Source: Prasinococcaceae sp. CCMP 1430
Taxonomy: Eukaryota > Plantae > Prasinodermophyta
NCBI GenBank assembly: GCA_013416795.1
Contig: RQSC01001207.1
Location: forward strand, 1-50,972
DNA length: 50,972 nucleotides
Direction: 5' to 3'
The notes under the pieces are model-generated. The model was not told the DNA's origin. It did no database searches and was given only the letters and a program-made list of their open reading frames with translations. The first letter of the stretch is position 1; each line of letters opens with the position of its first letter. A program made the position numbers and the translations under genes. Positions 46,506 through 50,765 of this stretch are shown in pieces.

Positions 46506-47181
46506 GGACCTTGGCTCGCGCTGGGCGCCTGACGGACCTTCGTTCGTCTGTATACTATGGTGGTACCATATCGTCTTTGTATCATTGCTACTTTTGTACA
46601 TGTACACCTTGCTATCTCTAGCTAGAGTAGAGCTCTCTCTCTCTAGCTATGGCCCCGCCTTCCCGAACATCCACTGGCTTGTGTCGCCCGTCGACGAGCG
46701 GAACAACACCAGCAGCCAAACACACGCACCCGCGAGTGCGGCGACAGTGTACGTCCACCTTGCTGACTCGTACACGTTAGCTACGTACCAAAGTGCAGAG
46801 AGTGCGAGGAGGGGGAGGGAGCGCGCCCGCGAGGAGAGGGGTGAAGGATGGCGCGCAGCATGAGCGAGTAGCGGGGTTCCGTGGGGTCAGCAGCGGTGTC
46901 GGCGACATTGCGTGTGGAGACGCCGCACGCGCGGCAAGCTCAGCCCCAAAAGCACACGCGCGCGGCCACCAAGCGCGCGCGCGCCCCCGACGCGCGCTGG
47001 CCAGCGCAGTCCGGCGTCTGCACGTGCGCGCTCGCGCGCTCGCTCGCGCGCGGGAAGGCGCGAGAGAGAGAGAGTGGCGCCACATCCGTCGCGTCGCTGA
47101 CGCACCGAAGAGCGGCACGCCTTCCTTGGAGCTCATCGCGCGCCCGGCGCCCGGCGTGCGAGCGCGCGCGGGGGACGGGTA

Positions 47182-47207
47182 GGGGGGGGGGGGGGGGGGG
47201 GGGGGGG
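47182..47207 (+). repeat. G26 homopolymer
   Basis: Direct count; lies 20 bp from an N, so the length may be unreliable. Confidence 0.8.
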
Positions 47208-47409
47208 ACCTTTCCCCCGTGCAGGCNCGAGCGTGACCGCGCCCCGACTGGCGCCCCGACCCGGGTCGTTTCCCACACGACAATTCGTTTCGCAAAAAAA
47301 AGCAGCGCAGCGCGCGCGCTTTAACAGCCTCGCATGGTGGGCGCGGCGCCACACCGCGCGCGGGGAGGAGGGGGGGGAGGGAGGCGAGGGGCATTGGCGG
47401 CGCATCGCA

Positions 47410-49338
47410 ATGGCCTCCCGCGCGGCCGTGCGGCCCCTGCCGCGGCTGGCCCGCGCGCCGGAGCAGCAGCAGCGCGGCCGCGAGAGGCGGCAACGCGGCA
47501 GGCCCGGGGTGGCGAGGCGCGCGCGGCAGCAGGCCGCGTCCGGCGCGAGCGCCGCGGACGGGAGTCCGGCCACTCCGGCAGGCAGCACGCCCTTTGGTAT
47601 CGAGCAGTCTGGCTCTCTCGCGCGCTGCACACCCGTCGTGCCGCCCGAAGTCGTCGGTGTTGACGTGATCGTGATCGGCGGTGGGCCTGTGGGCATGGAG
47701 GTGGCCAGTTTGGCGCGCGGCCTCGGCAAGAGGGTGCTCGTAGCGGAAGTGCGCGGCTGCCTGCTGGCGGCACCTACTGCGACGGCCTCGAAGGCGCTCC
47801 GCGAGGCCTCTTGTCGCCTAGGCGCGCCGGACGGTTCGCGTCGCGTGCCGTGGGGAGACGTTCAGGCGGAGGTCAACGCCGCGATCGCCCGTGCGGTCGA
47901 CCTGACAGAGAGGCGAGGCTTCGCGGGCGCCAAACCAAAGAGGATCGACGTCGCCGCGGCTCCCCATTCCGCGCCTTCCCCGTCGGAGCCCGGGCCAGAG
48001 TCGTTGCAGATGGCGTCACCACGCTCGCGCGGCTCAGTGTGCGTCGTAGCGACGCGCGCGCGCTTTGCGGAGGGCGGAAGTGGTGACGTCCTTTTGGAAT
48101 ACGCAGGCACTGGTTCCGGTCTCACGCCGTGGGGCGGCGCCGTGCCCTGCACCGTGCGCGCGCCGTTGGTCTTCCTGGCCACCGGCTCGCACGCGGCCCG
48201 TCCAAGCGTGCTCCCATGGGACAGTGCGGACGCCCGCGGATGGCTTTTCGATTCAGACTCGGTGGCCAACCCCGCGAGCAACCTCGGCTTTGTGCCAGAG
48301 GATCTGGTCGTCCATGGCGGTGGAATGATCGGCACTGAGTACGCCGCCATCATGAGAGGACTAGGCGCGCGGGTGACCCTTGTCTGCCGCGAGGACGAGC
48401 TGTTGGTAGAGCAGCAGGTAGACGAGGACGTGGTCGTTGCGATCAGGCGACGGATGGAGAGTCTTGGCATCGACGTGCGTCTCGCGCAGGACATCGTCGC
48501 AGCCATCCCTCCGAACCGGTCAGGCGGTGACTCACGAGGAAGCGTGCGGCTCACGAGTGGGGACGAGCTGAAGTGCGACGCACTCCTCTCTTGCGTCGGT
48601 CGTGTAGGCACGAGCGAGCAGCTCGGGTTGGATTCCGTCGGCCTGCACGCGAATGGAGACGGCAAGATTGAAGTCGATTCTTCGATGTGCTGCGGCATCC
48701 TGAGCCGCGAGGTGGAGGAGGGTGCCAGTGGTGGGGTGTCCACCACTGCGGTGTACGCCATCGGCGACTTAGCAGCGAACGCGCCCATCGAACCGGTGGG
48801 AATCTCGTCGACCGGGCTCGCCCAGGCGCACCTGGCGTTGCGTAGGGCGCTTGAGTCGGAGTTCGAGCTCGCGCACCCCAAGTGGCCCCGGCACATCGTG
48901 CGAGCCCCACCGGTCATGATATGGACAGAGCCTACAATTGCGTTCGTTGGAATGTCGGCGGCTCGCGCGGTCGAGCTGCATGGCGAGGCCGAGGTGGGCT
49001 CCGAGATCGTGCACTTCAATGAGACGACGCCGAGCATCACGCACCCGATCGAAGGCTTCTTAAAGCTCGTGTACCGCGTGGCCGACGGGCGCGTGCTCGG
49101 CGTGCACGTTGTGGGCAACGCGGCGGAGGAGATCATCCACCATGCCGCCGTCCTGGTCAACGCCAACGGCTACGACTCCATTTATTGCCTCATCGCAGAG
49201 GTGCCGGCGGGGCACACCTACTCGGAGGCCTTTCGCATCGCGGCCGTACGCGCGGCGGAGCGCGTGGAGGATTGCGTTGACTCGGTCGGCATGCCGCGAG
49301 CGCAGCACGAATGGGCGGGGCAGTGGCTCGACGAGTGA
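47410..49338 (+). CDS. Flavoprotein pyridine nucleotide-disulfide oxidoreductase, soluble transhydrogenase (SthA/UdhA)-like, with a transit-peptide-like N-terminus
   Basis: DVIVIGGGPVG (FAD); SKALREA with no CxxxxC; ATGS; FDSDSV; GGGMIGTEYAAIMRGLG; GRVG...LGLDSVGL; VYAIGD; IWTEPTIAFVG; FLKLVY...LGVHVVG...EIIH; TYSEAFRIAA. Confidence 0.75.
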   Translation: MASRAAVRPLPRLARAPEQQQRGRERRQRGRPGVARRARQQAASGASAADGSPATPAGSTPFGIEQSGSLARCTPVVPPEVVGVDVIVIGGGPVGMEVASLARGLGKRVLVAEVRGCLLAAPTATASKALREASCRLGAPDGSRRVPWGDVQAEVNAAIARAVDLTERRGFAGAKPKRIDVAAAPHSAPSPSEPGPESLQMASPRSRGSVCVVATRARFAEGGSGDVLLEYAGTGSGLTPWGGAVPCTVRAPLVFLATGSHAARPSVLPWDSADARGWLFDSDSVANPASNLGFVPEDLVVHGGGMIGTEYAAIMRGLGARVTLVCREDELLVEQQVDEDVVVAIRRRMESLGIDVRLAQDIVAAIPPNRSGGDSRGSVRLTSGDELKCDALLSCVGRVGTSEQLGLDSVGLHANGDGKIEVDSSMCCGILSREVEEGASGGVSTTAVYAIGDLAANAPIEPVGISSTGLAQAHLALRRALESEFELAHPKWPRHIVRAPPVMIWTEPTIAFVGMSAARAVELHGEAEVGSEIVHFNETTPSITHPIEGFLKLVYRVADGRVLGVHVVGNAAEEIIHHAAVLVNANGYDSIYCLIAEVPAGHTYSEAFRIAAVRAAERVEDCVDSVGMPRAQHEWAGQWLDE

Positions 49339-49399
49339 GCCCGGGGGCAAGCGCGCGCCCTCGGTAATATTATTATTATATCCGCGCGCGTGCCCTCGG

Positions 49400-50765
49400 T
49401 CAGCGCGTCCCCGCGAGCTTGCGCCGCTTGTTGCGGCGCTCTATCTCGCGCAGCCTGTCCTGGACGCCACCGGCGCCCTTGCGCTCGCCCTTATCGGCCA
49501 AGGGTCGCATGGCAGCGCGGATGCACGTCCGCTGCTGCTCGCCCACCGGCCACTTCTCGGCGGCCTCGTCGGTCTGGAGGAAGAATATCGCCGTGTCGTA
49601 CGACGAGGGCCGCTCGCGCTCCGCCGCGGGCCGGGAGTGCTGCGCACCGTCTACATACACGTGCTCATCCGCCGGCAGCATCAGCGGTTCGCCGCGGCGG
49701 AACGTGCTCCCCATCAGCGCGCTGTAGAACTTGCATTCGCGCCACACAGGCACGACCACGGCGAAGGACAAGGCACGCGGCTTCCCGCGCTTGCCCCCGC
49801 CCTTGCCGTATCGCGAGGGTGCACCGGCGGCGGCAGCGCCGAGGAGGCCCTCGACGTGCTCAGCCATGGCTGACATCGTCTCCGGGACGAAGACGGGGTT
49901 GGCCTCGTACGAGCCGCGCTCCGGGTAGAAGTCGAGGAAGTTTCCGGACGATCCAAACGGCGCGTCCACATCGGCGAACGCGCTGCAGTACGAGCCGGTC
50001 CGGCAGTTGAGCGGGCTGGCGAAGCACTCCCCGCCTGCGCACACGGCCTCGCGCAGCGCATCGAAGCCTGCGGCGGGAACGGCACACTGGTAGCCCGCGC
50101 CGCCGACGGCGTCGTAGCGGCACAGGAGGCAGAAGAGCGCCCGCAGGAACTTCTGCTCTGCCTCGTCGACGGAGGCGGAGCGCGCGCCCGGCGGCAGGTT
50201 GCGCAGGTACAGAGTCTGCAGCTTGTCGAGGTGCGCCTCGGAGACGACGAAGTAGGGCTTTGCCTCGGGGTGGCCGAGGGCAACGTTGAAGAGCTCGCCG
50301 CGTCGCGTGCAGTGCACGCGCTCGAGCTCGTCTGCGCCGCCGCCGCCGCCCACCAACTTTGCGGCGGCCGCCTTGCCGGCCTTTGCGAGCGCTGCGGCCA
50401 CCTCCTGCGCCGCCCTGCCGCCCAGCGCGTGCCTCGAGAGGTCTCGCGCGAGGCCCGCGTCGGGAACGCCCGAGCACGGCAGCAGCAGCTCGCCACGCTC
50501 CCTGTCTTGGCGCAGCGCGTCGCGGCACGCCCAGCGCTCGTACGCGAGCGGAGGGACCTTGCCCGACGGGGCGCGCGCCCTCGGGCCGGCCTTGCCATCC
50601 TTGCTTCCCGCTCTGGCCGCCTCCTTGACGCCCTTCACCAGCCTCGACCGCAGCTTGGACGCCGCCGCGCGCCGCGCGAGGCGCCGCACCGACCGAATCC
50701 CAGACAGAAAAGATGCTCAACATCCACCCACACACCGACCCATCGATCGACCCACCCGACGACAT
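49400..50765 (-). CDS. PCIF1/CAPAM-like cap-specific adenosine N6-methyltransferase domain protein; 5' end unresolved
   Basis: CLLCRYD, ECFASPLNC, YCSAFADVDAPFGSSGNFL, GSYEANPVF, LSFAVVVPVW, HVYVDGAQH and TAIFFLQ follow the PCIF1 motif order. Coding frame is ORF 49400-50689. Confidence 0.82.

Follow-up and report, generated by a model that had tools for sequence, protein, structure and literature searches.

A divergent SthA-like flavoprotein gene of the green picoalga Prasinococcaceae sp. CCMP 1430 and its place in an apparently old algal gene family

Which reaction is carried out by a flavoprotein that shares the fold of glutathione reductase (GR) and lacks its redox disulfide and catalytic histidine, in which compartment of an algal cell would it work, and where does its gene come from? 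These questions are raised by contig RQSC01001207.1 of the green alga Prasinococcaceae sp. CCMP 1430 (assembly GCA_013416795.1), analysed here over its full stretch of 50,972 nucleotides (the window). On the plus strand an open frame extends from 47233 to 49338, with the first ATG at 47410 and the stop codon at 49336–49338; the intronless coding sequence (CDS, 47410–49338) encodes a product of 642 amino acids (aa). A first-pass annotation had compared the product to SthA (UdhA), the bacterial transhydrogenase that is soluble and acts on pyridine nucleotides. Judged from its sequence, the protein has slightly better than an even chance of being an SthA-type transhydrogenase that exchanges NADPH and NADH independently of energy.

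The product contains Pyr_redox_2, Pyr_redox and Pyr_redox_dim, the three Pfam domains of the class I pyridine-nucleotide oxidoreductases, and is a flavoprotein of the soluble type without a transmembrane part. Among the NCBIfam models SthA (NF003585) scores best with 175 bits, followed by lipoamide dehydrogenase (Lpd, 143.5 bits), GR (123.6 bits) and MerA (123.1 bits), the last three (123–144 bits) against cut-offs of 409–606. The best sequence match in the PDB is 9n4y, the SthA filament of Azotobacter vinelandii (E 2.9e-27). An AlphaFold2 model of residues 75–642, built from a 94-sequence alignment, reached a pLDDT of 85.1 and a pTM of 0.87, the segments of low confidence being essentially the inserts at residues 173–201 and 235–243 (numbering of the full protein) and the tail. 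With this model, Foldseek placed the chains of 9n4y on top (E 2e-35, TM 0.87 by target) and lipoamide dehydrogenases just behind. A shape search of the ESM Atlas listed ten clusters, of which nine bear the name SthA; the feature search of the same resource returned generic pyridine-nucleotide oxidoreductase clusters only and did not discriminate.

The catalytic residues were compared in a reference alignment with SthA, Lpd and Gor of Escherichia coli and plasmid MerA. Together with the Pfam domains it bears out the initial description as a GR-fold flavoprotein without CxxxxC and HPT motif. The site of the lost disulfide, RGCLLAAPTATASKALR (residues 115–131; 47752–47802), identified by motif tables and alignment, is a variant of the motif (G/A)PTGxxSK(A/C)LR of the algal clade described below, and two residues shorter than GGxCxHxGT(I/L)PSK of SthA. 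Of the complete SthA-type loop GGxCxHxGT(I/L)PSK(A/T)LR the window protein, with LLAAPTATASKALR, keeps SKALR only, and it has the clade loop in the variant form AAPTATASKALR. There is no conserved cysteine in LLAAPTATASK, whereas disulfide reductases have GGxCxNxGCxPSK; no CxxxxC is present, and the lone Cys117 stands in a column occupied by Leu in most relatives. At the other end of the protein, the C-terminal segment PAGHTYSEAFRIAA (residues 599–612; 49204–49245), aligned to NYPTMAEAYRVAA of SthA, lacks the histidine of the disulfide reductases (HPT..E): the window protein has GHTYSE and SthA YPT..E. His602 falls into the column of the proline and is not conserved in relatives.

The SthA-like segments named in the first reading are all present and align with their counterparts in E. 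coli SthA. FDSDSV is found at residues 280–285 (YDSDSI in E. coli SthA), and GGGMIGTEYAAIMRGLG (residues 303–319) and PAGHTYSEAFRIAA are aligned with IGCEYASIFRGMD and YPTMAEAYRVAA, respectively. The protein has an intact ATG motif, an intact GD motif and two intact GxGxxG motifs, and it retains all the cofactor positions that are nearly invariant in the 94-sequence alignment. The FAD-binding GxGxxG (GGGPVG, residues 90–95; 47677–47694) was assigned by this alignment, in which its glycine columns are invariant and its proline column nearly so. The Rossmann motif for NAD(P)H, GGGMIG...TLVCREDELL (residues 303–332; 48316–48405), is covered by alignment and by Pfam Pyr_redox. After the second beta strand of the NAD(P) domain it reads V-C-R-E-D, where the acidic residue of the Lpd type is missing and an arginine occupies the first Arg position of E. 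coli Gor; these residues appear compatible with binding of NADPH as well as NADH. The second FAD motif, VYAIGD, is followed in the alignment by an insertion of 6–7 residues, NAPIEPVGISSTG (together 48751–48816), which is common to the other proteins of subclade A and P0112. A low-complexity insert in the FAD domain (residues 173–201; 47926–48012), predicted to be disordered (pLDDT <50 in the AlphaFold2 model), is lineage-specific; among the aligned sequences only P0002, a transcript sister to the Aureococcus protein, has a counterpart, a similar low-complexity insert.

The nearest relatives of the window protein are algal. A word-based search returned three informative relatives only, followed by Lpd-like proteins of high-GC Streptomyces which share low-complexity words, and a profile search of 1.84 billion representative proteins was needed to reveal the clade. 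In this profile search bacterial SthA proteins of 460–480 aa scored about 165–200 bits, and dozens of longer proteins (500–1500 aa) with the loop (G/A)PTGxxSK(A/C)LR scored 250–520 bits. Named members come from diatoms (Seminavis robusta, CAB9503753; Grammatophora oceanica), pelagophytes (Aureococcus anophagefferens, KAK7254105; Pelagophyceae sp. CCMP2097), the cryptophyte Guillardia theta (XP_005839650), the chlorarachniophyte Gymnochlora, dinoflagellates (Breviolum, Kryptoperidinium), the red alga Porphyridium purpureum (two paralogues) and the green alga Chloropicon mariensis (MMETSP1311 transcript). The nearest algal relatives are 37–44% identical to the window protein and bacterial SthA about 25–30%.

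Two trees were calculated, a quick one of 106 rows and a careful maximum-likelihood one of 67 rows and 474 columns (LG+C20+F+G4 PMSF). The comparison with SthA, Lpd, MerA and GR that had been proposed at the outset puts the window protein on the SthA side: SthA and the algal clade are split from Lpd/Gor/MerA at 100/99 in the careful tree, and the same split is found in the quick tree. Support for the algal clade is 100/98. In the careful tree the bacterial SthA proteins, with E. coli and Komagataeibacter among them, are united in one group (95/83) that has the algal clade as its sister; in the quick tree the algal clade is nested among the bacterial proteins. The subclade of the window protein (100/99) also comprises Porphyridium, Aureococcus with an unnamed culture transcript, and the Chloropicon group; these relatives together are the sister group of the window protein (100/93). 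Forcing the window protein and the Chloropicon group together costs 13.2 log-likelihood units (approximately unbiased (AU) test, p 0.0146); unnamed metagenome proteins make up four of the six rows of the tested group, which was picked after a first tree had been seen. The AU rejection as a sign of gene transfer was dismissed in view of the long branch of the window protein, the mostly unnamed rows and the post hoc choice of the group; it is taken to show no more than a deep and divergent position of the window copy. From its distribution, the gene family appears to be an old one among algae, with members in primary algae, both red and green, as well as in complex algae. Since the clade spans many algal lineages including Chloropicon and Porphyridium, a recent bacterial transfer into the alga is not supported, and the horizontal acquisition suggested in the first-pass annotation is not indicated.

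The clade members are named in the databases as 'Soluble pyridine nucleotide transhydrogenase', 'NAD(P)(+) transhydrogenase (Si-specific)', 'hypothetical protein' or 'glutathione reductase'. The Seminavis protein CAB9503753 and the Guillardia protein XP_005839650 carry the automatic annotation of a Si-specific NAD(P)+ transhydrogenase. P0088/P0244 of Aureococcus ('glutathione-disulfide reductase') and P0086 of Porphyridium ('Glutathione reductase, chloroplastic') are misnamed, as the CxxxxC pair is missing. The Aureococcus model KAK7254105 seems to be mis-spliced at the C-terminus, with a KH_1 match and no alignment after about residue 330. A C-terminal pair of EF-hands is found in many diatom and dinoflagellate members, such as P0099 (Seminavis robusta) and P0246 (Kryptoperidinium foliaceum). 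P0078 combines His_Phos_1, two SthA-like units and EF-hands, and P0076–P0080 are two-copy proteins, probably of dinoflagellates. Such candidates for a calcium-regulated soluble transhydrogenase seem to be undescribed so far. Six further proteins of about 900 aa (P0123, P0143, P0156, P0169, P0182 and P0221) have an SthA-like C-terminal half with the loop FGG(P/S)(T/S)GLxSKA(F/L/M)R; the N-terminal half of P0123 matches DUF5939.

In the transhydrogenase reaction as it would proceed here, NADPH reduces the bound FAD, NADP+ departs and NAD+ accepts the hydride at the same site (ping-pong), so that the outcome would be a reversible and energy-independent exchange between NADPH and NADH. Thiol-disulfide chemistry is excluded by the missing redox disulfide and acid-base histidine, and NAD(P)+ is the most likely acceptor in view of the kinship with SthA. 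Several findings weigh against this assignment. The loop on the flavin side differs from that of SthA in length and sequence and is modelled at a pLDDT of 69 (model residues 41–50). With 175 bits the whole protein stays below the NF003585 cut-off of 465; the same applies to all algal members tested, which have SthA as the best model at 171–301 bits, while a Bacteroidota SthA (Aquimarina, P0151) reaches 525 bits. The window protein has the longest branch of its subclade (0.98), and an assay of any member of the algal clade was not found in the literature searched. Furthermore, Cys-free relatives of the fold can be NAD(P)H:quinone reductases, for instance the mycobacterial NAD(P)H-quinone dehydrogenase of the LpdA type. 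What stands of the SthA-like identity claimed at first is the best match among profile models, PDB sequences and structures and the split at 100/99; a canonical SthA the protein is not, given the score of 175 versus 465 bits, the separate clade and the other loop.

An NAD(P)H:acceptor oxidoreductase of the quinone reductase or diaphorase type, in which a quinone or some other small acceptor would take the electrons from the reduced flavin, is therefore a possible reading, if a rather doubtful one. The shortened and altered loop and the SthA scores below the cut-off throughout the clade allow a changed acceptor, and the quinone dehydrogenase model NF005883 (NAD(P)H-quinone dehydrogenase, LpdA type) is detectable at 85 bits; however, this is half of the SthA score and falls far short of the model's own cut-off (479), and tree and structure both place the window protein with SthA. 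Much less can be said for a disulfide reductase, either a glutathione reductase or a lipoamide dehydrogenase. The public names of the Aureococcus relative and of one of the two Porphyridium relatives would suggest glutathione reductase, a naming that was rejected on account of the missing cysteines; CxxxxC and the catalytic histidine are absent from the window protein and its relatives alike, the GR and Lpd models score below SthA and far below their cut-offs, and the tree splits them off at 100/99, which leaves this reading hardly any probability. A paralogue that is catalytically dead or in decay and serves in structure or regulation would fit the longest branch of the subclade, the departure of PTATASK from PTGxxSK, the low-complexity inserts and a pN/pS of only 0.41 against a wild strain, a ratio that rests on 15 nucleotide differences and is uninformative. 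Two observations nevertheless make such a protein very unlikely: nearly invariant cofactor positions have been retained, and the gene is apparently expressed; in addition, the frame is open, the core is modelled confidently, and the differences from the wild strain lie mostly in presequence and insert. A bacterial contaminant, or a recent transfer from a bacterium specific to this alga, might be supposed for a gene without introns, the more so as SthA is otherwise described as bacterial and, in reviews and a recent preprint of structural work, as occurring in certain bacteria only (bioRxiv 10.1101/2025.02.04.636493). This too is barely credible in the face of eukaryotic flanks, matching composition, the same gene in wild strains at 98% identity, and nearest relatives that are algal, bacterial SthA being far more distant.

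The SthA-like gene belongs to the nuclear genome of the alga, a GC-rich green picoalga, and is no contaminant, as its flanks, its composition and the wild-strain copies demonstrate; on this point the earlier judgement held. The GC content of the window is 65–72% throughout, in keeping with the 69.8% published for Prasinoderma coloniale (PMC7455551), the most likely species of the alga, and the CDS has a GC of 0.68 and a GC3 of 0.79, compared to 0.71 and 0.85 in the upstream neighbour. The latter is a eukaryotic gene for a ubiquitin-specific protease with UCH, DUSP and ubiquitin domains. The downstream gene (49400–50689, minus strand), likewise eukaryotic, encodes a PCIF1_WW domain, that of the family of the cap-specific adenosine methyltransferase; it is arranged tail to tail with the SthA-like gene, the two stop codons being 61 nt apart. 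P0001, a 98% identical gene model of a wild strain from a Tara metagenome, has its start codon further upstream, in a place where the window has a Trp codon, so the window copy starts at 47410.

Transcription and the lack of introns are supported by two sequencing runs. In run X1 a single contig of 1896 nt covers 47487–49382 with no mismatch and no gap, and in run X2 two contigs cover 47526–48527 and 48604–49275; these colinear contigs agree with the intronless structure originally read from the letters. Both runs carry the same organism code, and their RNA nature is only guessed: they are probably transcriptomes, since the intergenic stretches 46836–47103 and 47238–47371 are without coverage and one X1 contig nearby shows a junction bounded by GT..AG on the minus strand. 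Very probably, then, the gene is transcribed, and no intron interrupts it over at least 47487–49338. The X1 contig with the junction connects 47106 to 46780 and skips 325 nt (window 46647–47136, minus strand). The spliced product, encoded between the genes for the protease and the SthA-like protein, has an open reading frame (ORF) of 54 codons, from the ATG at 47136 to the stop codon at 46649–46647, with one hydrophobic stretch; the second exon has no Pfam match. About 200 nt 5' of the start codon of the SthA-like gene there is a G homopolymer of about 26 nt with an N behind it at 47227 (window 47183–47227). The contigs of all runs break at this G run, and hence the region of the promoter and the 5' untranslated region is poorly assembled.

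The N-terminal extension (residues 1–84; 47410–47661), a candidate organellar presequence by alignment and composition, is not present in the aligned bacterial SthA. GxGxxG begins at residue 90 in the window protein and at residue 12 in E. coli SthA, which gives an extension of about 78 aa, and among residues 1–84 there are 15 Ala, 14 Arg, 10 Pro, 9 Gly and 7 Ser, in line with the Arg/Ala/Ser-rich stretch of about 80 aa reported in the first-pass annotation. An extension of this size suggests import of a FAD flavoprotein of the dimeric type into an organelle. It is also more variable between strains than the mature part. In DNA run X10 of another strain (Tara contig L003) 9 nt are inserted after 47482 (47482–47483), within the extension, which matches the three residues that P0001 has in addition; of the seven residue differences between the window protein and the wild strain, three lie in the first 49 residues.

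An organellar location of the window protein is likely from these features, and plastid and mitochondrion are roughly equally probable as the compartment; the plastid targeting suggested in the first-pass annotation has no support beyond that. Many members from complex algae in other subclades start with a signal-peptide-like hydrophobic stretch, a small residue followed by F/W/Y, and a basic region, the arrangement of the bipartite plastid signal of complex plastids. Among the relatives compared, bipartite signals of the plastid type are confined to these other subclades, and none was found in the subclade of the window protein. There, the Aureococcus protein starts with MLLRRALSSLSIRRF, a mitochondrion-like presequence of 14 residues without a signal peptide and without an in-frame ATG upstream, and P0002 has a similar basic N-terminus with stop codons upstream. 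When a stramenopile presequence has no signal peptide, this speaks for the mitochondrion as its destination. The N-terminal peptide of Chloropicon has about 40 residues, and Porphyridium P0309 has no extension.

It is unlikely, although worth spelling out, that the algal clade represents a eukaryotic family of soluble transhydrogenases which in this early-branching green alga acts as a valve from NADPH to NADH inside the plastid. If so, the NADH from the valve could, for instance, be used by the type II NAD(P)H dehydrogenase that takes part in chlororespiration and cyclic flow, and the EF-hand paralogues of other algae would carry out the same reaction under calcium control. Algal studies of the NADPH/NADH balance in organelles consider the membrane-bound enzyme only (PMC9292941), or an unidentified transhydrogenase that would supply NDA2 (PMC11314055). 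A widespread SthA-derived family of algae with putative organellar presequences, and with EF-hands in some lineages, is a concrete candidate for the missing NADPH/NADH transhydrogenase activity. In the literature searched no treatment of a eukaryotic or algal soluble transhydrogenase was found, and the genome paper of Prasinoderma (PMC7455551) does not mention a transhydrogenase. The bare idea of an SthA is already in the databases through the automatic annotation of some clade members. What appears to be new is the Cys-free shortened loop of the clade, its presequences, and the EF-hands and tandem copies of other members, and the window gene is one divergent member of this algal family and not a unique acquisition. 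In addition, the glutathione reductase names of some relatives in public records are shown to be wrong by the missing catalytic cysteines.

Among the known systems, bacterial SthA/UdhA (EC 1.6.1.1) is closest to the window protein. Both have the same fold for FAD binding, NAD(P) binding and dimerisation, neither retains the redox disulfide or the catalytic histidine, and they share the segments (F/Y)DSDS, IGxEYAxIxRGxG and T(x)xEA(F/Y)R(I/V)AA. However, the loop AAPTATASK of the window protein is Cys-free and two residues shorter than GGxCxHxGT(I/L)PSK, and the protein has in addition an N-terminal extension (about 80 aa), 6–7 residues after the GD motif and two inserts predicted to be disordered. 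SthA of A. vinelandii forms filaments (9n4y). With the algal clade the window protein has in common the Cys-free shortened loop and a C-terminal segment of the xxAVT(Y/F)xE type, and with the relatives of its subclade the insertion after the GD motif; it differs from the latter by PTATASK in place of PTGW(V/I)SK, the longest presequence and an insert of its own. Neither the EF-hand pair of the diatom and dinoflagellate members nor the tandem duplication of the two-copy members is present. Lpd and Gor of E. coli and plasmid MerA show the same fold and cofactor motifs (TM 0.80–0.84 to solved Lpd and MerA structures), but all three have GGxCxNxGCxPSK, and Lpd and Gor also HPT..E, neither of which occurs in the window protein. 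A membrane-bound transhydrogenase has been discussed for diatom plastids and apicoplasts (PMC9292941). PntAB/NNT would serve the same physiological purpose, the interconversion of NADH and NADPH in organelles, and belongs to an unrelated family of membrane-bound and proton-coupled enzymes.

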